Shown in pieces: positions 3,001 through 28,096 of a stretch of DNA of 64,000 nucleotides. Both the position numbers and the translations under genes were made by a program. A model generated the notes under the pieces. The model did no database searches, was not told the DNA's origin, and was given only the letters and a program-made list of their open reading frames with translations. The stretch's first letter is position 1. Each line of letters opens with the position of its first letter. Location: contig NW_025766447.1 in NCBI RefSeq assembly GCF_003918875.1, forward strand, positions 3,472,001-3,536,000, in the 5' to 3' direction. The stretch is from Haliotis rubra (taxonomy: Eukaryota).

Positions 3001-5601
3001 CAGCCCATTAAAGAAGTCGTTTACACTGGAAGGAAACAGCAGCGCCACTGGTAGTTTCACGTTGCATGCTGGGAGCACAGTTGGAGTAACCACGTGAGCA
3101 TATGAGTTCGAATTAAGAAGTAAANNNNNNNNNNNNNNNNNNNNNNNNNNNNNNNNNNNNNNNNNNNNNNNNNNNNNNNNNNNNNNNNNNNNNNNNNNNN
3201 NNNNNNNNNNNNNNNNNNNNNNNNNNNNNNNNNNNNNNNNNNNNNNNNNNNNNNNNNNNNNNNNNNNNNNNNNNNNNNNNNNNNNNNNNNNNNNNNNNNN
3301 NNNNNNNNNNNNNNNNNNNNNNNNNNNNNNNNNNNNNNNNNNNNNNNNNNNNNNNNNNNNNNNNNNNNNNNNNNNNNNNNNNNNNNNNNNNNNNNNNNNN
3401 NNNNNNNNNNNNNNNNNNNNNNNNNNNNNNNNNNNNNNNNNNNNNNNNNNNNNNNNNNNNNNNNNNNNNNNNNNNNNNNNNNNNNNNNNNNNNNNNNNNN
3501 NNNNNNNNNNNNNNNNNNNNNNNNNNNNNNNNNNAGATTCATAAATAGAAATGTTCAGAAGCATTTATGCCGTCATCGCTTGTCTTATTAGCGTCCCAGT
3601 TTTGCCCTTTGAAATGAAATATCATGTTGAATACTGGTGTCCAATAAGGGTGTGTATCTGTCCCATCAACGGCCGACATTCAGACATGCTGGGCCCTTCC
3701 TAGCGCTGTCAGCCTTATTGTGGTCTCCGAAGACTGTTAACTGTATCCCAGACGTAATCATAGTGAACTTCCATCTTTCCTCTTCCCTCCTCAGATAAGC
3801 TGTTACACGTCGCTGTCACACCATGCATTTTAAAAAGATCAGGAACATATTTGCTCCATGTAATCAATGGTTTCAGCACAGTGACAGTATCGGCACAGCC
3901 ATCGGGGGTATCAGGCCACAGTCCTCAGTTTGATACCCGCAGGATCACTGTGGAGGAACACATCGTCAGGGTGAGTTGATATCCATGTCACTGCACTATC
4001 CGGTTACCTAATACATGAGTTCATGTACAGACATGGAGGATACTGAGCATGTCTCCGGTACGGTTTCTGGTAGAAACCAGTAGGGATGTCTTAGGCTGAC
4101 TCGGTTGACACATGTCATCGTATCCCTCTTGTGAAGATCGATGCTCATGCTCAAGGTGGGTGGGGGTAATTGATTTCACTTACTTTGTACATAAATTTCC
4201 CCTAATGCAAGTCGTCTTCCTTGTCACACAGTCTTGTGCAGGGGGTTTGACTCTTACGTCTGTATGCAAAGATCTAAATATTTCACAGGTGAGGCGGTTT
4301 CACTGACCTCCTTTAGTTCCAGCTCAGGTAGACAAATACAGGCTAGTTGACAAATGTTGGACGATATCAGATCATAGATATACCTGAAGCTGAAGTTCCA
4401 CACATGCCCTTGTTTTCATTTTGCTAACATGTAAAGAAATACGACCATCAAATAGGAGAGCGCAACTGAAGATTTAAAACAACTATTTGCATATAAGTGT
4501 AATTAGAATGTTCATTTAGTTTCGTTGTTGAACTGTTTCAGAAAGTGGACAACACGACCCCTGAGTGTAACGTCACCTCCATGACCGGAAGTTGCAGTGT
4601 GGCTCAGATGGATCCGTGTAGTTGTCACATTCACACGTGGTCAGGGACGGCGGTGTTCGGGGATGTGGGTTTCGGGTTGTTCCAGATATCGTCCGGGACG
4701 TCGGGCAGCTTCACGTACGACAACTTCACCATGGGACATACCATTGACAAGGGGGGTCAAGACGGCCAGAATAGGGTAGGGAATAATTGAAATCGGTCAC
4801 TATATTTTAAAATATGATCTATCTCTAAGTAGTGAACGAGTATGTTACTTACAAAAAGATGCAATGCTAGCATTAGTTGGTTAGTAAGTTATTTAGTTGG
4901 TTGCAGTTGCAAAGACGTTATTGATATTAACCCCTGGACTATCTTGTCTATACCAAAATTTTTAGCTGTAATATTTTTTTAATGAGGCTTTAAACAATAG
5001 ACAAACAAACGACACTAAACACACATAAGCTCAGCCTCTAACAGAAATATCAAAATGTGGACTGTACAGGAGTGACTGCTGCCACCCGGTGTCTTACATC
5101 AACGTGGTCGACATGGCCAGCAACACTGCTCAGTGCACATTTGACTTGGCTCCCGGACTCCCCATACCCGTGTACGACTGTGCGAGCACACCAGCTACTG
5201 CAAGTACATCATTTAGCATGAACCCGGTACGTATAGTATCCATGCATGTACATTTACATATACAAGATGATATCACTGGCTCTGATGGTAGTGTACATTA
5301 CGTACGTATGTCAAATAGTTTGACCATACGTTTATATATACCTTTCATTATTGTGGATATGTTTATTAATGTCCTTTTCCTTAATGATTTCAATGAAAAT
5401 GACAAGGTTTGTTTAATTACACAGAGTGAAGAGACTAGTGGCTTGTCTACTGGCGCCATTGCGGGGATAGCAGTGGGTGCGGCAGCGGCGTTGGCAGCAA
5501 CGATTGTCACAGCTGTTCTTATTGGCAAGAAGGCCCTCTGCGTCTCCAAAACACACCCAAAAGTGGAGACGAGCCAACCCCCTTTGGGACATACACTGTG
5601 A
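59..5601 (+). CDS. VWA7-like paralogue A, 5'-partial, with C-terminal transmembrane helix
   Basis: GT-AG exons 59-227, 801-880, 1530-1686, 1891-2060, 2482-2593, 2892-3093, 3877-3970, 4542-4775, 5070-5226, 5425-5601. Peptides resemble the VWA7 C-terminal half (VPIDNTIRELTIKI, PLPGLWHL...QSTIDFS, IRGTDEPGNMLQR, SDCCHP). Hydrophobic GAIAGIAVGAAAALAATIVTAVLI followed by GKK. One frameshift in the G run at 4751-4756. Confidence 0.85.
3125..3534. other. Assembly gap (410 N) within an intron of paralogue A
   Basis: Run of N. The flanking exons are phase-compatible, so no exon need be missing. Confidence 0.99.
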
Positions 5602-6627: not shown

Positions 6628-9600
6628 CTATAGTGTGGACGAGTGCACGGTAAATGTTCTTGTGACATACTGGAAGTCCTCGGGGGCGTCTATAGCAGTC
6701 GCCATTATCGTCACAGTTCTGGAAAGACATTGAGCAAACATGAAGGGAACGACAGTAGTGTACTTCAGACCCAGACATAATTTTCATTATAATGGTAGAT
6801 CTATTATTAATGTGACAGTTTCAACTAGCCACATGATATATGATGGACAATATGATGGAGATAGTAAGTAGAACTTCCAGTTATATGGTGGGCCATCTTT
6901 CCTACGATGGTGTTGGAGATTCCGAGCTAGAACAGTTTCCCAGCAAGCTATGCTGGTCACGTGAGGCCAATCAGAAGTATGGGTGGTCAGGCTCGGCGAG
7001 TTTTTGATAGCATGCCATTGTATCCCAGATGATAATGATTGTCTAGTCTAGACTCGACTATGTAAAGGAATCCTTTACTGGAACTGTGATACGCTCGTCG
7101 TTCAATGAAAACAATGAAGGAAATGTTTCGGATGTTGTATGTCCAAACAAATTTGGTAATGACCTTGAGAAATATAAATCGTTTCTCGCGGCAAACAAAC
7201 AAAATGTTTTGGTCTCAATGGGGTTTTGTGTAGTTTTGTTCGCAACGACACCTCTAATGCTTACAAAACTATTTTCTCACAAAAGCAAGGTTTTAAAAGA
7301 AGGCTGATGATGATATATATAGACGATGCTTACGTTGACACATCGGGAGTCCTTCCTGCGGCAATTACAACTTTACGTCTCGTGTTTTCCCCCGGCTGAA
7401 GATTCAGTGTGATGCCTGAAGTAACTGCTAGCTTCAGACTGTCTGCTACATCCAGTTTCACTCTTTCAGAGTTGCGTCCCTTGTTGATGACCTTCACATG
7501 TATGTGTGTTTCACTTCCGACTTGAAGATCTCCTGGTATACATACATCCAAAGGAACAGATATATGATAATGAACGCTCCGTGCTGCTACAAATAACGTA
7601 CAACTCGAAATACACAGCTGGGCAAAAAGGGTATTCATTTGGAAATACCAAACCTTCAAAAGTTACTAGGCCGAAAATCATCACCCAAACACGGCAGAAT
7701 GCAGCTATGATGTCAAATACATCACTATCGAATGACTATTTCTTGTTTGTCAGACGTTGGTGTGTCTTATGCACGGCAGATTAGTTAAAATGTCATGTCA
7801 ATAACGGAAATCCCATGGACAACACGGATATAACGAAAGAGAATGCAAAGGAAATTATTTTTACGCATCTTCAAATAATGAACAATCCTATGATGTTCCT
7901 GACGCACTGACGTTAACGGAGGAACAGACTGAGACATAAACTGACCAACAACTCGTTCCACGCTGAGGGACAGGGTGCTAGGCTTAATTAGATCAGGCTT
8001 CTGTCGTTGAAACAGGTGCCCGTCGTTATCCCGCCCTTCAATAGCCATGCGATAAGGCTGGAAAAGAATACCATGATCAATTGCTTGCCTCATTGGAAAA
8101 CCGCATACTGGCATACAATATTGCTATTTGTTCACAGCCACTTGTAAGCTATAGTAACGGGATCGTAAGTAAATGATCGAGTGTGCTAGTAACAGACTAC
8201 ATGGTCTGTAGCATATACCTGATCGGGAACAGCGATACTGGCAACAAAGTTGTGGCCTCTCTTCTTTCTGTGTGTGAGGCTGCAGCGGTCGATCTCCTCA
8301 CCCACAGTGTTATAGAGGATCAGAGAGTCTATGGAGGATACAGCGTTAGCTGCCGTCACTGCCACAGCGTGGGTCACAGATTCACCTGAAGATGCATATT
8401 CAGAACAAGTTCATAAAATACCCAAAACAAACGACACACATTTAGTCACACTTGCAAACAGAATGAACACACTCGAGTTGCCGATGTTTGCCACCAGAGT
8501 GGCTTCTCTGTCTGTCCCAGTGGTTTGTCGAGCCGAGGCACATCCGTGGTTGACAGCACGATGACACGCCGCCAGTCATGGATCTCTCAATCTTCTTTAG
8601 CTGAACTAGCGTACACCATCAGAAACATAATTGCAGTAATAGTCATGAGCATGGGTATGAAAACTTGGTCCGAATATACCCGAGGTTGTCCGAAGATTCC
8701 CGAGAATGTGATCTATGACGACTATATCACTACGACTGCACTGTGACTATGGAGTGGAGTGGTCGTGATTTTTGTGATTAGTCCTGAATCTCGAATATTT
8801 CTGACATTGTTTGTCAACCATACGATTGACGACGAGACAATATAAATCAAACCTAGTTGAAGGACGAACTGATAATATTTGCCAACCATCAGATAAATGG
8901 ACGAAATAAGTTAGCAAGTAAGTACAATTTCAGCCTTACCTACTACCGGTTTCCCCTCGATGAACATACTGTGTCCGTTGTCATTTGTTTTGACCATGTT
9001 GTCTTTAATGTCTAACACCGAGTTGCCGTAGATGCTGACCTCAGCGACGTCACTGCCGTCGTTCTTTACAGCCCACTTGCCAGGCTTGGGGGCCTAGATT
9101 TGTAACAGAAAAGAAAAGAAGTACGGACAAAATATCTAAAAAGTAAAAGTATAACACATAACTAAACTATAAGCACGTTGGTTACGGGCAGATGACAATG
9201 TATGGAAGAACGGTGACTTTGTGTCTACCTCAACTATGAGTTCGCCTTCTTCGTGTTGGGTGACAGGAACCAGTTCACCTGCAAACACAATACATCGAGA
9301 ATATTTAACCACAACTGCTGAAAACAACAATAACTACTCTGTAATACTGAAACATCGAAAATGTTTTGAAAATATTACCATTTTGCGTAAATCATATTGC
9401 CCACTGTGATAAAGTCATTAGTTTAAGATATTCTAACGGGGGTTGAAGTATGTGTATAATACGCGTGGTTATACATTAAAGGCACCTACCGTACGGGTTA
9501 AACACTCTCACGCCCCCATTGTTGTTGCTTCCTATCAGTAGCGTCTTGACCGTGTTGTCCACGTGGAACATGTTTATTGAGAGGCCTCCGAGGGAGAATT

Positions 9601-12600
9601 CGCTCAAGAGAGGCAACTGCCTCTGAGGAATCTGAAAGGTATACGTCATAACATATACATGCGGGGCGGTGGGGTAACCTAGTGGTTAAAGCGGTCTCTC
9701 GTCACGCCAAAGACACGGGTTCGATTTGCTCAATGCGGCGTAAAACTAAACTCACTCACATATACATGCATCGTACACCCAGAAATATGTATCATTTCAT
9801 ACCGAACGAGGGTCTGAATACACAGTCTTTCACAGTGATGTGATATCACGAGACTCCGAGGTTCAATGCACTGTAACATAACTGGAGGCAGCGACACGTT
9901 ACACATTACCTTACCTTATTTGGTCTTGCTGAATATGACGAGGTTATGTGCTGTATGTCAAATCCAGGTGTCTTGGGGTTAAACTGGACAGTGCCACGAC
10001 CTATGCAGATTCACAAGCGTTTTTTCATCATAAGTAATTTTGTAATCAGTACTGTTATTTACCTACATTGTTTGATACCATAGTGCCTTATCAATGATAA
10101 TTACTTAATTAACTTTAAATTGAGAAAGGTGCCCTGAAAGGTAGATGTCATGTAGACACTTGCCACTGTTTCTCTTCCTCCGCGAGCAGTCTCCGGTGAG
10201 AATGAAGCTCACTGCGATCTTCTTTTCTGTTACCATGCTCGTGACGTAGTTGATCTTGGCCGCGTCTTTGGGCGAGGCGTCGGTAAAGACGTACACCTTT
10301 GAGTTAGGGTTGGCAACAGTAGCGGCTGTCGATGGATGAACTACGTTTCATATATTGCTTTCCGTAGTAGTTTTATGAATATGTCTACAAATACAGCAGT
10401 ATGTTGAGAAAAACGTTTAATTACCATCCATGCATTACCCGAAAACATGATGCTACATTATAAGTCATTAACCATCGCAAAAAGTATTTTCAACAGGTTC
10501 AGTCAATCTTACTAATTACAGACCAAGTCAGGAGTTTGTGTCATTTACGAACAAAGCGAAGAGAATCCAGGACTGTCTGCATGTACTGGACACATACCTG
10601 ACTATACCCTTGTCGGGGAAACTTCTGATCGGTGTTTATGGCGCACCTGCCTGTCGACCTGTGAGGGAGAACTGTGATCGGTGTATATGACGTACCTACC
10701 TGTTGACCTGTGAGGGAGAACTGTGATCGATGTATATGACGTACCTGCCTGTCGACCCGTGATCGGTGTATATTACGTACCTGCCTGTCGACCAGTGAGG
10801 GAGAAACTGTGATCGGTGTATATGACGTACCTTCCTGTCGACCCGTGATCGGTGTATATGACGTACCTACCTGTAGACCTGTGAGGGAGAACTGTAATCG
10901 GTGTATATGACGTACCTGCCTGTAGACCTGTGAGGGAGAACTGTAATCGGTGTATATGACGTACCTGCCTGTAGACCTGTGAGGGAGAACTGTAATCGGT
11001 GAATATGACGTACCTGCCTGTCGACCCGTGATCGGTGTATATGACGTACCTGCCTGTAGACCTGTGAGGGAGAACTGTAATCGGTGTATAAGACGTACCT
11101 GCCTGTCGACCTGTGAGGGAGAACTGTGATCGGTGTATATGACGTACCTACCAGTAGACCCGTGATCGGTGTATATGACGTACCTGCCTGTAGACCTGTG
11201 AGAGAGAACTGTGATCGGTGTATATGACGTACCTGCCAGTAGACCCGTGATCGGTGTATATGACGTACCTGCCTGTAGACCCGTGAGGGAGAACTGTGAT
11301 CGGTGTATATGACGTACCTACCAGTAGACCCGTGATCGGTGTATATGACGTACCTGCCTGTAGACCCGTGAGAGAGAACTGTGATCGGTGTATATGACGT
11401 ACCTGCCAGTAGACCCGTGATCGGTGTATATGACGTACCTGCCTGTATACCTGTGAGAGAGAACTGTGATCGGTGTATATGACGTAGCTGCCTGTAGACC
11501 TGTGAGAGAGAACTGTAGTCGGTGTATATGACGTACCTACCTGTAGACCTGTGAGGGAGAACTGTAATCGGCGTATATGACATACCTACCTGGAGACCTG
11601 TGAGATCTGTGAGGGAGAATTGTGATCGGTGTATATGACGTATCTACCAGTAGACCCGTGATCGGTGTATATGACGTACCTACCAGTAGACCCGTGATCG
11701 GTGTATATGACGTACCTGCCTGTAGACCTGTGAGGGAGAACTGCAATCGGTGTATATGACGTACCTGCCTGTAGACCTGTGAGGGAGAACTCTGGACAGT
11801 CACCTCCTCCATGGACTGAGAGACTAGAGAGATAATTCATCACAGCCGTTCCATTCTTGGATTTAAATATATCCGTCTTGTTACCTGAAACAAATTGGAT
11901 TCTGAATGATTTTGTGCTCATTCTGTTATCCATTTAATTCGGACTGTATGATTTGATATTTGTTTGTGATCAATTGTGAGTGAATGTGCGAGTGAGATGA
12001 CACGCCCCCATCCAGCAATGTAGCAGCAATGTCACCCCGGGGATACCAAAGTCGGACGCCACACCATTATCTATTCCCTCACCCCGGCCATGTTATCCTA
12101 TATAGTACCTGGATCGTTAAAGGTAACGACGATGTAATTATAGGGTTGGTTTATTGTGCCAAGTGTTTCCTTGATAATTTCCTGTGTCTTTTTTATGACG
12201 GCGGCAAGGTCGTCGCCCATGGAGCCGGTGGTGTCGATGACGAAGACCATGGAGTTTCCAGCCGTCAGTTGCAACAGTTCCTGAAAGTTCTCATCTCCAA
12301 TCAGGGAATGTAGACCATACGCTAGAAACAAAATACAACCAGAGAAATAGTTATAGGGAACATCTGCAGCATACTTGAACGATCCAATACTGCATTCAAG
12401 ACTAAAGACATAATTATAGTTCACTTTGAGCCAAACCCAACTGGAGAAATAATAATTACGGAAAATCTGTCGTCGGATTGGCAATCGGACTAAATTTGAT
12501 TAAGTTCATAATCAACTCCCGTGAATTATCTTGGTTAATGGTCTTTTGCTGAAGTTTATCACATGTGGCAGCTCATTCAAGGGAACTGTTGTAGTAAATA

Positions 12601-15600
12601 AACAATGGAAGAGTGAATGTGCTTCTACCTGTTACATAAAGGGTGGCGTGAATGAAGTGAACAAACTATATTTGACATGTAGGTCTCCGAGGTTCATAAT
12701 ATTTCAAGCGAACAAAACTTGAGTGAAAAGTAGACTGTTGAAAGAAATCTACAACTTGTGAATATGAGCCGAATAGGGACACACGAATTATAATCAGACA
12801 GTATCAACCCGAAATACAGAAGAAATGTTTACTTAAGTGAAGATCCGTTTACAAGTAGTCTTCAGCAACTCATGCTTGTCTTAAGAGGCGACTAACGGGA
12901 TCGTGTGACTCATGTCCTAGTATCCCAAATCAGTAGATATTTACAGCCCGCCGCCATATAGCTAGAATATTGCAGAGTGCGGCGTTAAACAACAAACAAG
13001 TAAGAATTATTTTCAATAAATGTGTCTGTGAATCGCTAAATGTGGGACACTTGCGTATTTACCAGGGTGTCCAAAGAGGAACCTAGTGTGCATGATCGCC
13101 CCCTGAGCGGCGGTGTCGTGAAGCGGGGCGTGGGGGGACATTTTGGCGTCGCTAGTGTCCTTGTTGATACCGCCGATAGCAGCAATGGTTTTACCAGACT
13201 GGTCATACGGGCCGCCGTGACTACATTTCCCCGTCTTGAACGTCGCTGGGTCCTCTGTAAGCAAAGTGTTTCAGTTCGTGAGTGAGTTGGGTTATACGCC
13301 GATTTTAGCAATCACGGCGGGAACAACAGAAAATACTTCACACATTGTACCCATGTATGAAATCAAAGCCGGGTCTTTAAACATTGGGTTACCCCTGTTT
13401 CCGTTAGGCAGAGTTCATTTAATGGCCAATGAATGTTGAGGGTACTATGTGAACAATCTGTTTCAGATGGATGAAGTAGATCGGTTGTCTAGTAAATGTC
13501 GATGTACATTTTACAACCTTTGGCGAGCATACATTAATTTACAGAAACATGGTTCTTTTAACCATGCAAACATCTCAGCTATACTATTGTCAACCAAACC
13601 CGCTCCCTCCCCAAAGTGACCCTCAGCTGCAGTTCGTTATATCCGAAGTTCGTTAGTCACTGGTTCGTTACTCCAGGGGTCAGCAACAGCATCTTGTATC
13701 CGGCAGCCGTGGTGCCATCCGGATTCAATGTACTCACTTGCCGGCTTGTGTCTGTCCTGTCCACTCCGGTATCCACTGGTCAGAAGGGGACCTTGGACTA
13801 TGATGTTGGCTGTGCAGGGTATCCCAGTAGAAGAGCTGAAAGGGGAGGGCGGTTCGCTGTAGCGGTTCACTGTTGTTAGAGCGTGTATCCAATGTACATT
13901 TCTGCATTGAAGGTTTAGTATTGGTCGGCAAACGGTATGCACATACTCTCCCATAAACATTAGATAGCATCATTCTTCCTCAGTTTCATACTTATTTGTA
14001 ACGCTGTAGGCTTATTTCATTGTATTCAGCAAATATACCTAGCAATATATTCATGAAGGGTGTCTGGACTGAAGGTCATGCATACATTACCAACACACTG
14101 CAGCCAACAGTTCATAACAGCTGAATATGCATACAGGTCATACAGAGTACAGCTGCACTCACCCACAGCTGCGACACGTGTCCATGGCGGATGGTGCCTG
14201 GGCCATGAGTGGTTTTCCCCGCATCCCTGTAGACAGACACGCGGTGATGTTGTTAGTCGGTACGTAGTGTTGCTATAGTCAGCAATGTTACAACTGTGTT
14301 ACAGTTGTTAGATACAACCAGTTGTTAAATGTAAGTCATAAACAACAGTCATCAGGAAGGTTGACAAACACTGCGCCAAGACACGTGGATTACTGAGGAT
14401 GCAGTGATAAGGGTGTAAGGGGTGTTATTAGTTCTTGTGTCTGGGGATGTAACGCTGTGCCTAGCAATATTCCAGTTGTATGAAGGTGGCCTGTAAATAA
14501 TGGATATTGTCAACAAAGACCAGGGCGTCATGGTACAACACGCTATCAACCTCGTCACCGAACCTGACCACCCAATCCACTATAGTTCACCTCTTATGAT
14601 CAGCATAAGTTGCTGGGATCCCACATCTGAATCCTCTCGTTGAGGACATGTGTGAACAAAGTTACAATTACTCGAGACTTATTCGACTATTCGAGGATAT
14701 TTTTACTTTTATCAACGAGTGCTGATATTTTCTATATCAGAAGACACGAGGGTGAGATTCTATTTATCATCAAAGATCACTCTTCATTGGTTTTGAAAAA
14801 TGTACATCTCTGAATACGGTACTGCCATTAGAATTGGAGTGCAGCGATGTCATAGCATTGTGACGTCATCAGATTTATGACGCCATACCATTGTGAGTCA
14901 TGTAATTGATGATGTCAAAGCATTGCGAGCTCATGTAATTTGATGAAGTCAGAGCATTGTACAAAATCTATTGTCAAAAACGATATCTCACACAAGCAAT
15001 ATCTCCATTGGAACACAGTTTTGGATAATAAAGACTTCTACATACACAGGATGCTATCAATATCGGCTGACTGTGCGAAATCTCACAGAACAAAATCCTG
15101 CTATGCAGAATGCATTTGTCGTGTGTATTGTTCATTCCGTAATTCATGTTTTGTTAACTTACTTACATATAAAAACGTCAATACATTAATACATGGTTTG
15201 AGCATACCTAGAGACTCATAGGCCGCCTTTCCACTGAGTTCCGGCCAGTTGGTGTTGCTGTAGAACATCTGGACAATGTGTAGAAACTGACCAATCAACT
15301 CTCGAGCAGCATCGAGGTTGGGATTGGTCTTGGTCTTGTTTAAAACATTGATGGCTGTTTCCCGTAGCAACGTGATCTTGTCGTTACCTGAAGTCGTCAT
15401 TATATTAATGAATTGCATTTCAATAAAACATTAAAATATTGAAATATTACTTTAAAATTCCATTACGTAGCATCACCCCATATTGATGGTGTTTCCAATT
15501 CATTTACGGATGATGAACTTCTGACAGCCGAGTGTATCAGTATACCACTTTAACATTAATTATCACATTCACAGCTAAAACAACACTTACATTTTCACCG

Positions 15601-17977
15601 ACCAATCTTATTTGAATAAGACGTCAAGTTCAAAGGTCAACTTTTATTTCTGACGTGACCTGAAATGGGATGTTGTCAGATCTTTGTGTAACGTAAGTGA
15701 GCACTGTAATCTAATCTGTCATGTTTAGTTAATATGCCAATGGCACCTTCTTTGATGGCCTCCCCGTTGACGTGCCAGGCAGACTCGGAGTAGTGGTCCT
15801 GGTCCACTCTGTTGTTGGCCTTCACGATGTCATCGATGGCCTCCTGGAACCGCTTCTCAGATACAGTTCCTGTCATCAAATTACATACAATAACACAACA
15901 ACCACAATCTACGAGGCATGATCTGTTTTGGAACATGGCAAAAAATGGCGGACATCACCACATGTTCCTTGTTCAAAACTCTATGCCGTTATGCAAAATG
16001 TTTTACGAAAACATTTACACAATATGATATATAGTTATGGTTAGTTTTATACGTTGTGCAAAAATGGGCATCTCCAGGGACCCTGAGAATATTATAGAAT
16101 GATCAGGAAAGCGTACCCAAAAATCTCTATTCTGTACTGTCATTTTGATACCTTTGTACGGAACTTGAATTAATTGTGAACAGAATATAATTGTTAATAA
16201 TAGCAAATTATTTTGCTGGAATCAACACGTTTCACGCCTAGTTCTTTTACGGATTGATTATTGATTAACGTTTCTGGTTTACCATGGAATCAACACGTGA
16301 CCATATTGACCTATCTATCTAATACTGACGATGTTATATTATCACTTCTGATACAAGAATAATGGATGACGTCATGTGGTTTTGTTAACAGGCTGCATTT
16401 TGCTTGAATTGACCAATCTCTGAGAGTCTGTAATTGGTAGTCTTTCTTCAGCCTTCACAACAGAGTATCACAAGAGCTAGCTAAATATCCTGCCATTCTG
16501 ACTGCGTTAATGTGCATATTACCCGCTTATATGTTGTTCTGGTGAGGTGTTATCTATAATGTGTCTACATTGCCTTGTATTCTCTCGGGTAAACTTCAAA
16601 TCCAAACAATGATAACGAATGCTGTGGTGACGTCGAATGAACGAAACCTCTCAAACACGTATCAAATTCATCCTACGACTGATTAAAGCATCTGGAACAA
16701 TGTCGTCGCATCATAGAAAGAAGAAAATCGTCGGCAAAGCAATGTCTCCTGAGCACCATCTCTGGACTTTAGTATCAGAACCAACATCATCGTACAACCC
16801 CATTTCACAACGATTTCACAGGACTACATCATGACACAGGTTCATTTGCAACAGCAGCAAATCCATGACTGCGAGAGATATCTGAACAAATGTGGAAAAC
16901 CTGTGGATGTTATTCTGGTACAACAACACCGTCTACTGGCAGATAACTGCATAACGATATGGGTGAAACTCCCACACAGGTATAGGAAATCTGGGGCAAG
17001 AACAGTCCTATGTTCTTGTGATGATGTACTACCTTTGTTCCCAAAGCAAATTCTTCTAACTTCATCTTTCAAACTGATGACCATGCATACCGCAAACTAA
17101 ATTGATTACAAATAAATTCATGACAGTGAAACATTCTGTAGTTTCGATCAGGTTACTTTGTGTGTTTATCTAGTTTAAGTTTCACTAGCCAATGAGAAAA
17201 TTACTCATTAAATAACAAGTTGCCGGAATAACTTGAAGGATATGAACAACCTTGTTCTGACAGGGTGTCATCATGTTGTAATGAAATGACATACTACTGT
17301 TTCAGGAAATGATTAATCAGTTACAGATAATCCTTAAACATCAAACCTCGTAAGCTATATTCAACGTATTCTTGGATCACTTCTATATCTGAAACAAACA
17401 TCTATAACCCAAATGACGGGAACATGGCAGTTCTTTCAGTTAATATAAACACATTCCAGCCAGATGGCAGCGGTTTGTAAATAATCGACAATCATATAAA
17501 ACAACCAATCCAGTGATTGTCATCACGAACATGGATCTGCCCCAATTGGGATACGATGACATGCAATAAATAAGTCAACCTGACTTCCCGATCCAGTTAA
17601 TCGCCTCTTACGACGAGTTTCGGTTCCTGAAGATCAATTATAACCTGGTTCTTCACGGGTTCGGACATTGGCATGAAATGCTCACAATTAAGTTTTCTTA
17701 GTTTCAATGGCTTGTTGGTTATACCTCCGTAATACTTGTCGAAGAGCTTCCTGGCTGTGATGTCCTTAATCCCGGTAAGCGCCCCAGGAGATATGGACTT
17801 GCCAGGCAAGGGGTTGTTTTCGAAGAACTCGGCGACAGCGTACAGGATGCCGATCTCCGTGATGTCCTGATGGGTGTAGTCGGAGCCTGAGGACAGGAGG
17901 GTGAACTGGTTGGGGAGGAACCCCCGGGCACAGGGCCATGATATCAGCGTTAACACTGTCAACAAGGTAAATAACAT
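6628..17977 (-). CDS. VWA7-like paralogue B, secreted, ~801 aa (signal peptide, Het-C-like domain, vWA, Ig-like C-terminal region)
   Basis: 17 phase-consistent exons: 17725-17977, 15747-15869, 15208-15387, 14163-14226, 13738-13835, 13063-13254, 12109-12321, 11765-11884, 10164-10325 (GC donor), 9915-10000, 9490-9631, 9229-9278, 8940-9093, 8219-8385, 7946-8057, 7334-7532, 6628-6718; total 2406 nt. Motifs: signal peptide then GFLPN, THQDIT, LLTSGY, KCSHGG, GGINKD..SPH..LH, vWA VFVIDTTGSM, GGGDCPE, VYVFTDA, furin-like RRKR. AATAAA (minus strand) near 6566-6571. Confidence 0.88.
10592..11790. repeat. Minisatellite of 49- and 36-bp units overlapping the exon 8 donor of paralogue B
   Basis: About 25 copies of GTACCTGCCTGTAGACC(TGTGAGGGAGAAC)TGTGATCGGTGTATATGAC. 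Confidence 0.95.
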
Positions 17978-18380
17978 GGTGTTCCCTATGGCAAATGTTC
18001 CTTATCTGCTTGGCACTTTTCACCATAACCCTGCTTCCGTTTAGAGCGCGTTCTGCGAATGATGTGACAGTAATTGCATTGGGCCGTTTCTAACCCGAAA
18101 ACACCATGTTTCCCCGTGATAACCTAAACGTAACACGGGTGTCACCCTCTGTCGTCACCGTTACTTCTAAAGACGGCGTTCTCACTTACATACTCTTGGT
18201 GAACACACGACACACCTCGTAATAATTATTTTTTTTACTCGGAAGTTTATGATTTCATTGGAAACTGTATTGTGATTCACAGGGTTACTCTTCAGATCAG
18301 TGTACATATATCACACTATCACAGTGAAACATATTCTGGACATGTTATTCAGTTATAGAGACGAAAGACAATTCCTTATA

Positions 18381-19253
18381 TACTGAAAGGCAAAAGAAAC
18401 GTCGCAATATTAGAAATGACATTTGAGTATCAATGGAGTATTTGAACCTATTTTTTTAAATATACACCAGAAGTCAAGTTTGAGGAAACATGAATCGTGG
18501 TCGTATAGCCTGCATTGCCCAATAAAGTATTGTTTGAGATTGAAGTTAGAATGTTTTTGTTTTTGGAGAGGGAAAAGTTCCCACAAACACAACATTGAAA
18601 TCGAGATGCACGTGCATCATAAATGCATTCAGGCATAAATTGCCGGCTTGAATGGCAATCGTTCACTTGTTTTCTGAACACAGCAGCTATGACTAGGTTA
18701 ACGAGAGATAAACCACAACAAGCTATTGGACGTCTGCACGCTGGTCAACATGCTCGAGTCATTGCTAATGACTTCAGTTGCAGCGTACGAACGATAGAAC
18801 GTCTTAGAGTGCGATACAACGCCACCAGCAGCACTGATGACCGTCCACGTAGTAGTCAACCCCGTGTAACAACACGTCGCCAGGACCGTCATATCGTCCA
18901 TCAACACGTGCAAGACCTATTCGCAAGGGCCAGAGAAACAGCTTGGGTGACCATAGGAAACCACCAGCGACCAGTCGGTGACCTACAATTCGGCGACGTC
19001 TCCAAGCCAGGAACCTGTTTTGTCGATGTCCTGCCAGGAGACCCATATTCACCCAACGTCACTGCCGGGAACGTATCCAAGTGGACACAACAGCGGCAAA
19101 ACTGTCGTGGGGGACAATGGAGAGGGGTTATCTTCTCTGATGAAAGTTGGTACTGCATTTCAGTGGCGTATTATTTTAAAAACATAGGTTCAAACGTCCA
19201 TTGATACTTAAATGTCATTTCCAATATTACGACATTTCTTTTGCCTTTCAGTA
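18381..19253 (+). mobile_element. Internally deleted Tc1/mariner DNA transposon
   Basis: Terminal inverted repeats TACTGAAAGGCAAAAGAAA.../...TTTCTTTTGCCTTTCAGTA. N-terminal transposase remnant (MTRLTRDK..AIGRL, DRPRS.QPRVTT.RQDR, WRGVIFSDES) truncated after the first catalytic D. Confidence 0.92.
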
Positions 19254-21179
19254 AACCAGCGAACCGAGAGAACAATGTCTATTCTTGATCGTCAATGCAT
19301 TCTGAAGGTATTTCGTACCTCAATAAACTAGTTCCGATTGGTATGAAGAAGGTATCGTTTTCGTCGTTTCAGGTACCGTTAGGTGATTCGTATTCTCCTT
19401 TGAGAAATTGAAACGTTGACAATCACTCGGAAGCGGATATGGTCTTGAAAGATGATTCGATAGTTGGACATGACACTGCAGTTGAATATGAGAGCACGAT
19501 TACTTGTGAGTGTGAGATCCCACCCGGGGAAAGCTGTATATAGTTGTCACGACTTTCAACTGTTTAGCGATATCTATGTACATTACCAGGATGTATACAG
19601 TGGCAGCTGTCAGTGTCCACGGCTATCTGACCGTAATCTCATGGTGACCTACTCACGTTGTTACCACTGAAACGTGTACCCATCATGCATCGTCTACTCT
19701 CGACAAGCTCTGACTGATTGACTGATTGATGTTTTATGCCGCACTCAGCTATATTCCAGCTATATGGCGGCGGGCTGTAAAAATCTAGTCTGCACCAGAC
19801 AATCCAATGATCAACTGCGTGAGCATCGATTTCTGTAATTGGGAACCGATGACATGTGTCAACCAAGTCAACGAGCCTGACCACCCAATCCCCTTAGTCG
19901 CCTCTTTCGACAAACATGGGTTGCTGAAGACCGATTCTAACCAGGATCTTCACGTATGATTGATATATCAAACGAGTGAATTAGTTTAGAACTTAATTCC
20001 ATGATGTCCCATGATCCCTCGCTGTCCTCGTCTCTATTCAACAACGAGACATTATCTGCGTACTATTTCCGTCGTTCATCAACAGCTATGACGTCGGGTT
20101 GAGTGATACAATAGGCGAAATGACGTCAACCCGTACCTGTGCAATGGACAGTCACAAACAGGAACATAATATGTATATATAGAGAGAGGATATTATATGA
20201 GTGCCCATGTCATATTATGTTTATGACACGAGTGCCTAAATGTTTGTATTTCCCGAGCGAGAGCATGAGTGTCGTAAACACAGCATGATATGGGCACGAA
20301 TATAATATTCTATTTATTACCGAAGTCGTCAAATTGAGGAAAATAAACCCAATACAAATCTACTTTCAAGCATAGGCTGGCTACCCGCCGTCGCCGCATG
20401 TAGAACGCAACGTCAGAGAAGAAACGTGACGTCATAACATTGTTCATGACGTCACGTCACCATGACAAAGTGATATTTTGCCCTAGGGCATCGTATGAAA
20501 TATATGAACCCCGATAGGTTCGCCCTCGTAGGTAATAAATTTTAATATGACGTTTACACGATTTATTCGGCTTTCCTTTGGACGAGAGGCTTTACCATTG
20601 GTCAGATGACGTGTTTAATTGACATGTACCAGTCTGTAGCAATTTATCAAAATATATATTGTACACATCTTTCTTATCACCTTGCATCTTTCCTGTCAGC
20701 CAAATGATCAAAGATGACTCACAATTGCGAGAGGCGCAGCATCATGAAAAACACAGGAAATCTCCCCCGACCCGTCTATCGTGTCGGTCATTATGACGTC
20801 CTGTATTTCAGGTAAACTGACCGACGTACTAAGGTAGTTCTGGTGGTCTTAGATTACGAATCTGTTTGTGGTAACCCACCAACAAAATGATGCACCTGTA
20901 GGAAAGGTTCACCATACGAACGCTCGTGTAACCGCGCCTTTTGATTAACTATTTTATTTAAGTTCAAAGTTTATATGTTAAAGTTCTATGGCTGCCCGTG
21001 TAAACACGTCAGAACTGCTACATGGAATTGTGTAATACATCCCTCAAACAGAGATATAAATATATACAAATTGACTGAAGTGAATGTGCCATGTCACTTG
21101 TAAACCCCTGATGTGTGTAAAACATTTGTTCAGAATATGTATTGTGTATCCTAATAGTATATAAATATATACCGATGTA

Positions 21180-21526
21180 ATGCTGAGTGGTGGTGTGTGG
21201 TCCTGTGCATAGAGTTCAGGTCACTCATCAGTTGAAGTTAAGCAACGTTGGGCACGGAGAGTCGCTGGGTGACCGTGTTTGGCAGCTTGACTATTGAGAG
21301 TGTCTAGGATTTCGGTCCTGCCCCACAACAAAGCAAATGAATTTGTCAAAAAATTGCCTATGTTCACCCAGCAGAAAATGGGTACCCGGTAGGATGTCAC
21401 GTGACTATTAACCTTCTAGCCAGCCCCGGGTTATCCGGGGTAATATTGTGCTGGGCTCTGATTGTTAACGCTGTGAGCATTCACCTAGTGAATGGAGTTT
21501 AGCGCATTATAAATGGACTTATTATT
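21180..21526 (+). mobile_element. SINE-like element with a 5S-rRNA-like segment
   Basis: GAAGTTAAGCAACGTTGGGC...GGGTGACCG resembles the 5S internal control region. Central CACCCAGCAGAAAATGGGTACC. Tail GCGCATTATAAATGGAC(TTA)n. Confidence 0.5.
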
Positions 21527-21528
21527 TA

Positions 21529-21953
21529 TACTACCCATCAAATGTTTAGACTCACTTAAAGCACTCACTATATGTTATGAATATATATATGGTTACATCG
21601 AAGATGAATTTCTCCACTAACTGGGTGGAACCAACTGCAAAATTTATGTTGATGATGGCACGAGTATCATGCATCAAATTTCTGTAAACCATGTGCAAAT
21701 ATCGCGCATGTGAACAGCTGCATTTTGGTGTAAAGTTTTGTTTAGAATTCGCTAATTTTCACTGAGTTTCATCATTTACTGAACTCATGACAATAATCTT
21801 TTGAACGTTACGAATTCGTTTTACAATACACCAGTTCATGTGTAAACAGCACCTTCAAACAGTATGGAATATTTTGCAAAATCCAATTAGAACAGTTGAC
21901 TGAAGTAAGTGGCTACATTTACACTAGTGAGTCTAAACTTTTGATGGGTAGTA
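21529..21953. mobile_element. MITE (Tc1/mariner-type ends)
   Basis: Terminal inverted repeat TACTACCCATCAAATGTTTAGACTCACT / AGTGAGTCTAAACTTTTGATGGGTAGTA flanked by TA; no ORF. Confidence 0.85.
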
Positions 21954-22171
21954 TATAGTGTGAAGGATGTCTTAGTTGCCTGAAATGTCGTCACGTCAGA
22001 TTCCTTGTTCCAACACTGATAATCAGTGTAACGAAATGAGATCTAATGAAGACAAAACTATTCTTTGTGACATAAATAGCCCTTTAATATATTCTTCGTA
22101 CTTTTGGTCATTGTATTAATAGCATGTGACCGTCTGAAGATGTCTCGTGTGCAGATTCCGCAATAGCGCCT

Positions 22172-25100
22172 TCATTGCTGAAATATACAGAAATACTAAA
22201 TACAGTTTCAATAGGTGTATTTCTTAATAAACTGACATACAAAACAAAGTACATGCCTGGCGCTTGGGGAATACTTCCCCCTAAAAGATCAAGTAAATAT
22301 TTTGACAAGTGTTTAATTGTGATGTACAAATCACATATCTTGTTTACATGTTGCCACGACACCACAGATTCCCTTCACAGGTATTCATTTGTTAAGTTAT
22401 AAGCATGTTATACGACAACAGTATCAAAACCATTGAGATTGTTAGTTGTATACCTGTAGAAGGCACACATCAAAATGCCAAGATTGGACATCCCACCTAC
22501 CTCTGACGCGTGCACTGTAAATGTCCTCATTACATATTGGTAATCGTCACTGGCATCAACAGGGGCAGCCTTGATCATAACGTTCCTGGAATATACACGT
22601 TGTGATGTCACACAGGTAAATGTTATATCCTTTAAATACACTTATACTCTATAACACATTTTGTGAGTGAAAATGAATTACTACATGTTGTTAATTGGAG
22701 AACTACATTCTCGAAACTCTGGATCAGTTTAGGATATGAATAGGGTTTATATATAAGGGATATTTTTATGTGCAACCTGTTCCGGTTTGAGATCGTCATA
22801 CTTGTATGACTTTGGTCATTTCTAAAAGAGTTAAAAACGTTCAGCATATATTGAAAAAAATAATTTTTGTTCGCTGGAATGTCAAACAGGTTACATAAAC
22901 AAACTTGATAAAATGACAGTCGCTAAACATGTAGTGCAAGATCAAGGAAAGTACGGCCACTCCCCAGGGTCAAACAGATAGACAGAAATCACTTACGAAG
23001 ACACCCCCGCATAGTGGCCGCCATTAAGTTCGAAGTATACAGTGACACTGACTCCTGTCCACAAGTACACTGTTTTGTTGGTGGGGGGCGAGACGAGGCC
23101 CTGGTCATCACTGATGCTCATTAACACCTTCTGATACGCGGACCCGCGATTGACCGCCTCCACGTGCAGGTACATATGCCCGTCCACCGCGAGCTCACCT
23201 GCAGAAAGTATACACAATATTTTGTACCTGCACAGTGTGTACGTGTAGCTGATATATACAATACTGTGTACCTGTTGATCACCTGTATAGCATATAAATA
23301 ACATTGTTTTCTTGTGGGGAATAAAGACGATAGCGTTTACCATTAAACCACATGCATTGCCTTTACACAATAGCGTGTACATGTAGAAAAATAATCAATA
23401 TTGTTTACCTACAGAGAGTGAGTGGGTGAGTTTAATTTTATGCAGCCTTTAGTACCAGAAATGGGCTTCACACACTGAATCCATGTGGGAAATCGAACCG
23501 GTTTATGGGCGTGACGAACGAACGCTCTAAACACATGGCTACCCTACCGCCCTTATCTCCAGAGAGTAAACGAACAATGTTGCTATTCTGCAAATCACCT
23601 TTGGATGGTTCAACTAATGTTGGAACAAATCGATACAAACAGTAGACATGAAGGTTCACCTTCAAACAAGTTATGAATATTAGTTTAAATACAGCGACCC
23701 AACTTCCATGTGAAAAAACAACCATAACTACAAGCAGTGATGTTTTGTGGATGTTTCAAGCACGTTCGTTGAACAATAAGTTTTCTATGAGACAATGCAC
23801 AATAATCAGGTATACACCTATCCTACCTTTAATATCCTGTATTTTCAGGTCCAAGGCACTGGGTTTTACAAGCGACATCTTGGCTCTCTTGAACGTATTT
23901 CCAAGCTTGTCTTTCCCTCGACCCCTACTCGGAATGGCTGCAATTGAGAACACAGTCGGCATTATACAATACACCCATTGTTTTTTGCACTTTTAAAAAA
24001 AAGCCAAACACATGCAGGAATAGTTTTCACCTTTTTGACTTTGAAAAAGTGCTACTATTCATCAATGTGTTATTTTATGTACAGAACAAAGGTTTATGTC
24101 TTCGGCAAACTCTTTATCTCAAACATATTACTTTTGCACTACCGGCGAAAGAGAAGCTGACTCACGACAGAGGGTATAGTACCCTGCGCCCCGTAGCTGT
24201 CACCCCTGTGACCTTGGGGGAGCAGTGGGGCGCGGTACAAGACGACGCCCTTCTCATCAATAAACACAACGTCATCAACCGAGCCCTCCTCATCGGCCCC
24301 TGAAACCTGGATCACGACAGGCGTGGTTGTACCTGAGTAGTAGAAGAACAGAGAATGAATGTTGTATAACGCCATGTTATGGTGGTCTGTAAAAAGACGA
24401 AACAAGTTGATAGTTCTTGAGTAAAGATCACCGATGAGTATTGAACGTTGACAAGGGCACCCAATGTTAGCAACCAGCTCTTGTTGCCGTCGGTTCACAC
24501 TATTGGACAGTAAGGACCTATTCAGAGCTGGAAGTCTCTCGGAGCCGGACTCGTTGGGTGGATTTGTGCCAGGATTCGCTGTTTGGGAGTTCGAATCGCC
24601 GATTCATTTCAAGACATCTACTACATTCACATCAAAGTTGATAATAAGTTTATTCTGCGATACTCAATACTAGTATTATTTCAAACAGATATCCACGTAG
24701 GGCTATGTTTCGTTCACAAATCCAAACACTAAAACGACAACGCCAGAGAATAGGCAGCGTCAATTGTCCTCTATTAGGCGTTAAAGTGAAAATAGTGATG
24801 AAAATCCTAAGAATGGATCACTGAAAATTAGAGACGATAGCATGTGTTCGCGAAAAGAGTAACTCACGCTTTATTTCTCTTTCGTGATGACCAAAACTAA
24901 ATCTTGAAAAGGTTTTCGTTTCTTCCCAAACTTAAACCTTCTTAGATTAACAATAAATAGTATTTCCCTGCGACTAGTCATATGTACACATGTTAATGTT
25001 ACCGACCCATGATAGGTCTTCCCTCCATCTGCATGCTGTAGCCTGTCACCGCATGTGTAGCTATGAACGTGATGGAGAAGTCCACGATGGTCTCGCCGTA

Positions 25101-28096
25101 CACGCTGACGTCCCAGTCGTAAGTGTCCAGCTTCTGAAGCCTCCACTCGCCATACTGCGATGCCTGGGGTTAGAGGTAAAGATGCAATATGACGACGTCA
25201 TCAAGACAAGACGCCTTGAGCATGCACTAGTTGCCTGGATATATGCGCTATATAAATATCCTATCATCATAATAATGAAAAAATAATAATAAGTTGTCGA
25301 TTGGAACCAGCGTTGCAGCCTTACAACTCACAATAATGGCGGTACTGTACAATTCTATTACAATAAATGAAGGTACTCACATTTGAAGGTACCGCATTAC
25401 CCATAATAATGGTAGGTAAACTATGATTTATAATGGAAGGTGAACAATACAGTAACTTATACCAATGGAAAATGCACTACGCACAATATCGGCACGGCAC
25501 GGCTCACATCAATAGAAGGTACGGCATTACTTATAAAGATGGACTGTACACTGTTACTCACGCCAATAGAAGGTACGGCATTACTTATAACAATGGACTG
25601 TACACTGTTACTCACGCCAATAGAAGGTACGGATTACTTATAAACAATGGATTACTGTTATAACAATAGAAGGACGGCATTACTTATAACAATGGACTGT
25701 TACTCACGCCAATAGAAGGTACGGCATTACTTATAAATATGTACACTGTTACTCACACCAATAGAAGGTACGGCATTACTTATAACAATGGACTGTACAC
25801 TGTTACTCACGCCAATAGAAGGTACGGATTAAAGAAATTTTTTAAAACACCCAACATAACAAAATAGGTAAATCTAAAACATACGGTCAGGGGGCGAAAA
25901 TACAATGGAGAAACATTTCAAAAGATTTCACAAAATATGTCGGTCGGTGAAAAAAGTAAACTCAGTCAAAGAGTTACTCATTCCGAAAGTGCCCAACGTG
26001 AACTAGGTTTTATAACTGGATTTAGATAATGGCCACAGGGGAAGTTACAATGAGATTGTTCTAAACCGTATTTTAGTTTTTCACTTGTGCAACAATGGTT
26101 CGGCAGATTCGACAGATACTATGATTACAATATAGTGAAACAATCGATGTCAGAATGTAGTCGAGTCTTCATCTTACCGGAATCACTATTTCGAGGGCTC
26201 CATTCCCCAGATAATCCTCCGACACAATTATTGGGGTGCCTGTAAACGTGAAAACACCGTGAAAGTTATCTTTACAACAACTACCGTACGATGTGTATCG
26301 ACCGTGTTGGTGGCTGTGCATTTATAAGTGTGAGTTTGAGAGTGAATAGTGTGTTATTATTATTATTCTGTTTTCAATATTTCATCCTTGATATAAATAT
26401 TTGTCCTCTGAACGGTGACTTCACAGTTTCAAAGATTGTGCCCTAACTGGAATTCAGCGTCGTGAGCACGCTTTATCCACGAGGCTACTACACTGCTTTC
26501 TCCACAAGATGACGTGCACACCTTTCTTAAGTCCGTAGATTACAGGATCTTACAGCAAACGATGCCTTCATTCAAAGGCACAGTGTATTCCACTCAAACA
26601 TCTTTTCTTCAATGTTTTTCAGTGGTACAGCACAACACTAGCAATGCATTATTACGTAATGCCCTTATACACCAGCTTTACCTTGTGGGTAATGCAGTTT
26701 GACGACTGGTTTGGCTTGTTTGGTTGTCTCCATGATACGTAGCTTGACGTGGCTGAGTGTGTTGTCCACTGGTATGTTCCGGTAAGGGTCACTGGGAGAC
26801 ATGTGGAAGGAGGCAAGCAGGACGTACGCGTGGGCAGAATCCTGCAGCAAAACATTTACTCTGAAAGATTTTACTCCAAAATTTCCAAGTTTTAATCCAG
26901 ATAAGGTGCCGAATCTTACCACGTATAGCTTGGTCACTTGACCAGGTATCGATGGAATCCGGGTTTCGCTGCGTCTATGAACCTTGTTTGTCAGTACGAC
27001 ACCTGTATCCGGTTTGCACCATAACCTGCACCACTCCTGCTTGTCTTCCCACATTAAGTCGTCATGAAACTCATTCACTCAAAAATATTAATTCACCAGA
27101 TGATATGTACTATTGTCCATCATTAGGCGATACCCTCTCCCTTCATCCCCGGTGTTTATGGTTCACCAGTTGTCCCGTACACACGAGCCTGCTCTTTCTA
27201 GCAAGATTTCAAAGAGCGTCATACAACCCTTGCTAATTAAGAAGTTGGTTGATAAAGGTTTCAAGGTCTCAATAACGTTTCGAGAATACCTTATGGTAGA
27301 CTTTTAGGTAACACTTCCAAATTTGATTCATCAGTGACAATTATGTCCGGTGCAATTCCCTATTTCGACATGTTCCGTGGATGTTTTGTCAGGTGAGCAT
27401 TTGACTTGCCTGTGCATGTGTGCGTGATGGGTGCTACAGATGGGGAGGGGTATGCTCACCCTTCCCCAAACCACCCGGATATCATCACCGTTTAGTTGGA
27501 GATGATTCTGGAACACATGCTCATGTTTCGTTTGCAAATGCAGTAGCCTCTCTGTTTGGCAAGGATTTATTTATGAACATGGGAAGGATTTTGAAGCTTT
27601 ATATTTTTAGATACGAACGCAGACGACAGTTACCTTGATGATTCCCGCCACCTGTGAGACGTTGGTCTTGTCTGTGTTGAAGACATTTCCGCCTGATGAT
27701 TGGGCGATCTGCTGGTACACTGAATCTGGTGGGTGAAATAAATAACAGTTATACTGTTCAGATCCATCCATTATGATTTTAACATCACAGTAAATGTAAA
27801 ATGAAAAATAATGACATGTTTTCAAAAAAGAAATTTTGAATTAACGTAGTTTTGGCAACATGTACCACTCCTAATGACCTCTTTGAATGTAGCAGAATAT
27901 CTATTAGTTCTTGAAATGTTCAAAGCTAAATAGAAATGTTTCAGATGTATCCAATTGTCCAAAAATATAAATTTGATAAACATCCATAACTTCTACCTGC
28001 GCTTCTTTTCTTCTTCTGGATTGGCAAAAAACCCTCCACGCAGAGCACACTTATGGACACAACAAACAAAATGGCGGTAAGTCGACAGGCCATCAT
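22172..28096 (-). CDS. VWA7-like paralogue C, N-terminally deleted (signal peptide + KKKR + C-terminal half only), ~380 aa
   Basis: Exons 27997-28096 (MMACRLTAILFVVSISVLCVEGFLPIQKKKRSA), 27634-27725 (DSVYQQIAQSSGGNVFNTDKTNVSQVAGIIK), 26682-26841, 26178-26239, 25007-25163, 24166-24332, 23827-23937 (1 nt short), 22997-23198, 22501-22585, and an uncertain last exon (CAA TGA at 22172-22177). Exon sizes of 157, 167 and 202 nt match the homologous exons of A or B. Confidence 0.8.
25503..25830. repeat. ~54-bp minisatellite in intron 4 of paralogue C
   Basis: About 6 copies of CTCACGCCAATAGAAGGTACGGCATTACTTATAACAATGGACTGTACACTGTTA. Confidence 0.9.

Follow-up and report, generated by a model that had tools for sequence, protein, structure and literature searches.

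A probable gene fission in progress between two tandem VWA7-like genes of Haliotis, with its break inside a von Willebrand factor A domain

A 64-kb stretch of the Haliotis rubra genome (contig QXJH01000024.1, assembly GCA_003918875.1), referred to here as the window, holds three genes of the VWA7 family: gene A on the plus strand and genes B and C on the minus strand. VWA7 is a conserved family for which we know of no mechanism, and its canonical members, including gene A, combine the Pfam domains VWA7_N, VWA_4, GBD_Hemicentin, VWA7_4 and Ig_VWA7. The subject of this analysis is the pair of B and C, which hold complementary parts of a von Willebrand factor A (vWA) domain and probably represent one gene in the course of becoming two. 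The three genes are placed as follows.

59..5601, plus strand: only the 3' part of gene A (RefSeq P0156, to 4787); convergent with gene B
17977-6628, minus strand: gene B, VWA7-like (RefSeq protein P0001, 801 amino acids, 17 coding exons)
28096-22501, minus strand: gene C, positioned upstream of B

The original prediction for this locus had described B and C as co-oriented tandem genes, and both were indeed found on the minus strand. Gene B was confirmed, but its predicted left edge was too short, as B reaches 6628; likewise, gene A is present as a neighbour, but it lies on the plus strand, runs convergently with B and has its own cleavage site outside the window. The tandem of C and B was found in four species (H. 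rubra, H. asinina, H. cracherodii and H. rufescens) and the complete C-B-A arrangement in three of them (H. rubra, H. asinina and H. cracherodii). The gene upstream of B encodes 380 amino acids (aa) in H. asinina and 539 aa in H. cracherodii, and in H. rufescens an 805-aa gene with VWA7_N and VWA_4 comes after C. As modelled by RefSeq, B has the same structure in H. asinina and H. cracherodii as in H. rubra.

Gene B encodes, in this order, a signal peptide, VWA7_N (E value of 5.8e-44 in a whole-protein Pfam search), positions 1-140 of the 169 positions of VWA_4, and a fast-evolving C-terminal half (C-half). It retains the residues of the metal ion-dependent adhesion site (MIDAS), namely DTTGS, GGGDCPE and FTDA, which would form a putative metal site. 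The following features of B are of importance here.

15745-15870, minus strand: B exon 2 (for its identity to gene A, see below)
10164..10326, minus strand: B exon 9; vWA strands FTDASPKD and FILTGDC, then RRKR and NSG; last base phase 1
10001..10163, minus strand: B intron 9; GC-AG intron with donor G/GCAAGT
9915..10000, minus strand: B exon 10; 86 nucleotides (nt), phase 1 to 0, flanked by AG and GT
9490..9631, minus strand: B exon 11; start of the first beta-sandwich domain, under relaxed constraint
6631..6717, minus strand: B last coding exon; carries the shared end QYVTRTFTVHSS

Exon 9 matches positions 87-142 of the VWA_4 profile and encodes RRKR at 10171-10182 on the minus strand. This site, which is replaced by RRRR in H. 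cracherodii, has the form R-x-K/R-R and lies in a predicted exposed loop (residues 465-473, with a predicted local distance difference test score, pLDDT, below 50); both RRKR in B and KKKR in C are of the furin-type substrate kind. The GC donor of intron 9 is conserved in H. asinina and H. cracherodii. The splice sites and the open frame of exon 10 are conserved in H. asinina, and the RefSeq protein of H. cracherodii has an equivalent segment.

The peptide encoded by exon 10 reads (G)RGTVQFNPKT...ARPNK and gave no match in a Pfam search even at an E value of 10, nor did it show any vWA similarity. As the original prediction had noted, this post-RRKR exon has the same phases as C exon 2 and nearly the same size (86 versus 92 nt), and B is without the Y..IA..SGG motif; the pattern occurs once in the window, in C. 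Searches for a hidden Y..IA..GG exon in B with the strict pattern, with a relaxed pattern and by tblastn with C exon 2 over the window found none, and weak repeated tblastn matches (E values of 0.18-2.4) fell in the minisatellite of B intron 8 and were taken for chance. At the DNA level, the local score between B exon 10 and C exon 2 was 20 and not significant, shuffled sequences scoring 16.2 ± 3.0 and a fraction of 0.13 of them reaching the same value. Judged from the sequences, only position, phase and size connect the two exons.

Two possible origins of the B junction segment were rejected. A frameshift origin of exon 10 was discarded on inspection by eye, as the other two frames hold stops. 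Read-through of the exon 9 donor, which would yield ...HDIYLSG... (compare ...DLYSG... in A), was attributed to coincidence, because H. asinina does not share these residues and C, too, is interrupted by an intron of the same phase.

Two further peculiarities of B were recorded. The peptide of exon 2 is 97.6% identical to that of A, as against 37-74% for the other exons, and is also 77-80% identical to bivalve relatives; its likeness to A could stem either from extreme constraint or from gene conversion with the neighbouring gene. Intron 8 contains a minisatellite (10626-11791, with periods of 36, 49, 85 and 134 nt) that begins at the end of exon 8. Its unit corresponds to the last codons of exon 8 together with the splice donor (FSLTGLQAG/GTACGT), and since the unit repeats both exon end and donor, the intron holds a dozen or more decoy donors.

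The second gene of the pair, C, is composed of the following exons.

27997..28096, minus strand: C exon 1; signal peptide, GFLPIQ, then KKKRSA; donor phase 1
27634..27725, minus strand: C exon 2; 92 nt, phase 1 to 0; encodes the final vWA helix-strand-helix, with Y..IA..SGG
26841-26682, minus strand: C exon 3
26239-26178, minus strand: C exon 4
25163-25007, minus strand: C exon 5
24332-24166, minus strand: C exon 6
23937-23827, minus strand: C exon 7
23198-22997, minus strand: C exon 8
22585-22501, minus strand: C exon 9

The GFLPIQ of exon 1 is the same start as in mature B and A, and the structure of this exon is shared with H. rufescens, the polybasic site being KKKR in H. rubra and RKKR in H. 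rufescens. Exon 2 reads (D)SVYQQIAQSSGG... and matches positions 152-169 of the 169 in VWA_4; in the whole-protein search, C matched VWA_4 positions 126-169 weakly, with an E value of 0.042 that is under the cut-off. Exons 3-9 (22501..26841) encode three beta-sandwich domains and end in QYVMRTFTVHAS; a short terminal exon of C was not located. The C-terminal end QYV.RTFTVH that had been predicted to be common to B and C was found in both genes, at 6652-6672 in B and at 22519-22539 in C. The Pfam matches within the C-halves of C and B (GBD, VWA7_4 and Ig_VWA7) were likewise under the cut-off (E values of 0.002-0.05), and the homology of both to the C-halves of the family is clear; structure prediction gives all-beta folds for both, with a pLDDT above 90.

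It had further been predicted that C keeps Y..IA..SGG yet lacks the half that precedes the cleavage site. This description agrees with the single occurrence of the pattern and with the search for N-terminal half (N-half) exons, which found none other than B's own anywhere in the 64-kb window. Because C has no VWA7_N and no such exon lies nearby, it is a VWA7 member of the fragment type only. Word-index searches with a length filter for C-type proteins outside Haliotis returned Haliotis only, which is not evidence of absence.

Such unusual gene structures might be artefacts, with C being a pseudogene or a mis-joined model, or B exon 10 a prediction error. The exon model of C reads open through exon 6 and then meets an apparent frameshift in exon 7, and RefSeq annotates only a 142-aa product (22172-23962). 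The frameshift was traced to a single position.

23914..23915, minus strand: missing base in C exon 7; GGG in the assembly, GGGG in the reads

An extra base after plus-strand 23914 is present in each of the four DNA read sets on this stretch, one of which is the likely source sample, and H. asinina and H. cracherodii also carry one base more at this site. Because the extra base in the four read sets restores the frame, the frameshift is an assembly error, which in turn accounts for the short RefSeq product. Gene C is thus intact and encodes about 380 aa. In H. rufescens, two annotated isoforms of C (376 and 382 aa) have the same exon structure and offer indirect evidence of expression, and the ratio of nonsynonymous to synonymous substitution rates (dN/dS) of C is 0.13-0.16 over about 290 codons against three species. 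The reads and the other species rule out C as a pseudogene, and the conservation of the exon 10 splice sites and frame, together with that of the GC donor, argues against a prediction error in B. An artefact is therefore very improbable, and this explanation has largely been refuted already.

As a separate observation on C, the 3' end of exon 9 and its donor are repeated in other species (L003:6428-7211 and L004 ~18580-18670), with about 12 repeats in H. cracherodii and at least two in H. rufescens. The repeats may explain the 539-aa model of H. cracherodii.

Laid against the VWA_4 profile, the parts held by B (1-140 of 169) and by C (only the tail end, weakly matched) are an exact complement, and A covers the profile from 1 to 169. 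A canonical VWA7 protein holds all 169 positions on one chain, whereas B ends at position 140 and C begins at about 141. B has in common with canonical members VWA7_N and a VWA_4 with MIDAS, C has in common with them the last vWA piece and the beta-sandwich tail, and in both the polybasic site stands at the family's usual position. Unlike A, neither B nor C has the extra C-terminal cysteine-rich domains and the transmembrane tail.

The place of this site in the family was examined in 112 aligned relatives. Most of the metazoan sequences have a polybasic stretch inserted between LTGxC and Y..LA..GG, and its carriers include lizards, fishes, lancelet, echinoderms, hemichordates, a coral and molluscs; the bacterial sequences have a short neutral loop there, and none of them has a polybasic site. 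In the searchable literature, nothing was found on this site inside the vWA domain or on the B/C pair, and no sequence relatives of these proteins were found in the PDB. The cysteine that precedes the polybasic site has a likely partner within the N-terminal chain (N-chain), the pairs being 404/461 in B, 403/460 in A and 401/458 in Mactra. Mature C contains no cysteine, and no inter-chain disulfide was found in any family member examined. Because C has no cysteine and the cysteine of the N-chain probably pairs internally, any association between the chains would be non-covalent, and with no cysteine to tie the N-chain of B to C, the chains could in principle exchange. As judged by its motif, the polybasic site of C would expose the same kind of N-terminus as that of a cleaved family member.

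The family also includes bivalve VWA7-like proteins of 456-572 aa that end at or just after the polybasic site (P0009, P0154, P0157, P0159, P0166, P0169, P0173 and P0082), and three of these share a short tail ending in F-x-[RK]-[IL]-x-[VIA]. One bivalve protein consisting of the N-half only (N-only) covers VWA_4 positions 1-139. The bivalve proteins were rejected as orthologues of B, because in a tree of N-halves they group apart from B, in a clade shared with a full-length Mytilus protein; for the same reason, the bivalve truncations are independent of that of B.

In a tree of the C-halves, B and C were sisters with support of 100/96, and the grouping was retained at 96/94 when the junction exon and long-branched rows were left out. 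The approximately unbiased (AU) test rejected both the grouping of C with A (p 0.0009) and that of B with A (p 0.0008). Relative to that of C, the stem branch of B was longer by a factor of about two in the first C-half tree and of about 1.5 in the second. In the N-half tree, B stood beside the A clade. The long branches of B and C are a caveat for all of these trees.

These relationships bear on the part of the original prediction in which C swaps with the membrane-anchored C-half of A. Put more broadly, C would stand in for the C-chain of canonical paralogues such as A, or act as its decoy, displacing or replacing it after cleavage and giving mixed secreted and tethered complexes. The RRRR site of A and its Y..LA..SGG exon lie to the left of the window, and its tail contains a transmembrane exon (5113-5601, plus strand) that is annotated as a separate 96-aa gene. 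The RefSeq model of A (914 aa) ends at 4787; in H. cracherodii the orthologue, of 1035 aa, includes the corresponding tail. Exchange with A would be compatible with its complete VWA_4 and RRRR site, with the lack of inter-chain disulfides in the family members examined and with the resemblance of the N-terminal stretch of C after KKKR to that of A after RRRR. However, the last helix-strand-helix of A is intact, so that its site would be filled in cis already, and C is sister to B, not to A. Moreover, A is without the MIDAS residues (DSSGFS, no GGGDCPE, and LTNA for FTDA) even if its VWA_4 outline is complete, and this degeneracy marks A itself as a divergent member. No support was found for the swap, and we consider it improbable.

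The selection acting on B and C differed sharply along the two genes. Among three species, the identity of B is 0.87-1.0 in the N-half, drops to 0.33-0.55 exactly at the polybasic site and comes back only to 0.7-0.8. The dN/dS values were as follows.

B N-half: 0.09-0.10
B exon 10: about 1.45 (25 codons only)
B exons 11-12: 0.55-0.61
B exons 13-17: 0.31-0.47
C exon 2: 0.04 (one replacement and six synonymous changes in 30 codons)
C exons 3-9: 0.13-0.16

The two junction exons are thus mirror images of each other in their selection, with about 1.45 in B and 0.04 in C. Between H. rubra and H. rufescens, 29 of the 30 residues of C exon 2 are identical, compared with 83% for C overall. The last vWA piece has therefore been kept in C, where the rest of its domain is missing, and lost in B, which retains that domain.

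We consider it probable that B and C represent a gene fission in progress, being old tandem duplicates that have undergone complementary decay. One ancestral VWA7-like gene would have given rise to B and C by tandem duplication, and the break would have fallen within the vWA domain itself, where a polybasic site of the proprotein-convertase type separates the fifth strand (LTGxC) from the last helix-strand-helix. In B, the N-module (VWA7_N and the vWA domain up to RRKR, with MIDAS intact) is under strong purifying selection, the junction drifts neutrally and the C-half is relaxed. C retains its signal peptide and the first residues behind it but has lost everything from there to the polybasic site, and its vWA tail and sandwich domains are under purifying selection. 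Both proteins would be secreted. A furin-like enzyme would cut B after RRKR, leaving an N-chain whose vWA domain misses its proper last helix-strand-helix, and an enzyme of the same kind would trim C after KKKR, so that C would then begin where a canonical C-chain begins. The two genes would now divide the work of the ancestral two-chain protein.

AlphaFold single-chain models of B and of C bear on an explanation that requires no such partition. In it, B would be a full-length protein with a divergent short loop and with exon 10 as a minimal last strand, and C an independent truncated paralogue with a new role as a small secreted beta-sandwich protein, keeping its vWA remnant for internal reasons, such as propeptide processing, secretion or capping of the first domain. 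The model of B reached an overall pLDDT of 86 and a predicted template modelling score (pTM) of 0.85, and its two halves are predicted to pack together. A short strand is formed by residues 482-486, and the segment 323-501 can be superposed on whole vWA domains with Z about 16 and a root mean square deviation of 2.5-3.0. The dN/dS below 1 in the C-half of B and the truncated N-only bivalve relatives without a neighbouring partner also fit this explanation. However, residues 462-501 have a pLDDT of only 42-55 and form neither of the expected helices, and this low confidence, together with a dN/dS of about 1.45 at the junction, is unlike a core strand; furthermore, the C-half of B evolves 2-3 times faster than that of C. 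Completion of the vWA fold by B's own exon, which the original prediction had named as an outcome that would speak against it, was accordingly seen in part: the model places exon 10 in the fold, but with low local confidence.

In the model of C, residues 1-33 are disordered, the helices at 34-45 and 54-67 have a pLDDT of 58-72 with the stretch between them unpaired, and the three beta-sandwich domains exceed a pLDDT of 90. The vWA remnant is the least confident ordered part of the model, its strand has no partner, and it is nevertheless encoded by one of the most conserved exons of C. A purely internal role of the remnant is not supported, because the remnant is conserved yet the least ordered in C's own model. 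Collectively, we regard the explanation without partition as rather unlikely.

In the most speculative step of this reading, the helix-strand-helix of mature C may, after convertase cleavage, dock non-covalently into the N-chain of B, next to the LTGDC strand, and complete the vWA domain. Docking is attractive because the coverage of the two proteins is complementary, the orphan piece of C is conserved and no disulfide ties the chains; we put it forward tentatively, as a possibility that is on balance doubtful.

Several observations weigh against the fission or the docking. The fission is incomplete, as the C-half of B is relaxed but not lost; with an open frame and a dN/dS below 1 in this half, B is not yet an N-only gene. 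In the model, exon 10 of B threads through the last-strand position of the vWA domain, and B may therefore complete itself, this threading being biased by the supplied alignment, which put exon 10 in those columns. The dN/dS values of the junction exons rest on 25 and 30 codons only. The N-half tree places B next to A, whereas the C-half tree places B and C together outside A plus other paralogues, and one of the two placements may be a long-branch distortion. No C-half gene was found within 10 kb of the bivalve N-only genes in Mercenaria or Mactra, which suggests that the N-module can stand alone. Co-occurrence of B-type and C-type genes, which the original prediction had named as a check, thus holds as a tandem in the four Haliotis species but has no counterpart within 10 kb of the bivalve genes. 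Docking in particular is weakened by these bivalve proteins and by B's own threaded exon.

All in all, every element of the sequence observation from which the original prediction started was found in the window. Its interpretation is supported in part, by a complementary anatomy that is stronger than the letters alone could show, by the selection, the conserved pair, the polybasic site kept in C, the lack of a cysteine link and the sister C-halves, but not in respect of the swap with A, and the partial self-completion of B in the model counts against it. New in the present analysis are the C-B(-A) arrangement across species, the integrity of C, the sister relationship of the C-halves of B and C, the mirror-image selection and the family-wide polybasic site.

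The window also contains the following features.

about 38-52 kb: ATIC gene (identified by eye)
18623-19204, plus strand: 193-aa open frame between C and B; weak DUF7368 match (E value of 0.0004), by eye a transposase remnant
3125-3534: run of N

Gene fission by duplication and complementary partial degeneration is exemplified by the monkey-king family of Drosophila. As in that case, B and C are tandem duplicates, each of which is losing what the other keeps, and the pair combines a sister relationship with opposite selection. Described fissions usually fall between domains; in contrast, the break between B and C would divide one fold at a point where a protease would nick it, with a decaying C-half still attached to B. 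Because the split falls exactly where most metazoan members of the family have a protease site, it suggests a rule that a protein which already consists of two non-covalent chains can become two genes without redesign of its fold. The presumed nicking of most metazoan members inside the vWA domain may have made the split possible, and it may also permit chain exchange among paralogues. The B/C pair would give a concrete handle on VWA7, as an experiment of nature in which each chain has a gene of its own.

Two-chain proteins that are nicked inside a domain and whose pieces stay together non-covalently are known from the GAIN/GPS region of adhesion G protein-coupled receptors and from mucin SEA domains. 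The likeness to B and C would lie in the cut inside a folded domain, in a terminal strand or helix embedded in the other chain and in the fact that no disulfide is needed. However, the GAIN/GPS and SEA domains are autoproteolytic and encoded by one gene, whereas a convertase would do the cutting in B and C, with two genes perhaps supplying the pieces. In this latter respect, the docking proposed for B and C recalls the donor-strand complementation of chaperone-usher pili, in which an incomplete fold is filled by a strand of another polypeptide. The pilins have an Ig-like fold and a dedicated chaperone, whereas B and C would share a Rossmann-like vWA domain in secreted animal proteins. If docking is true, the pair would constitute a natural two-gene split of one Rossmann-like fold in secreted animal proteins, and thereby a natural case of protein-fragment complementation in an extracellular adhesion-type domain.

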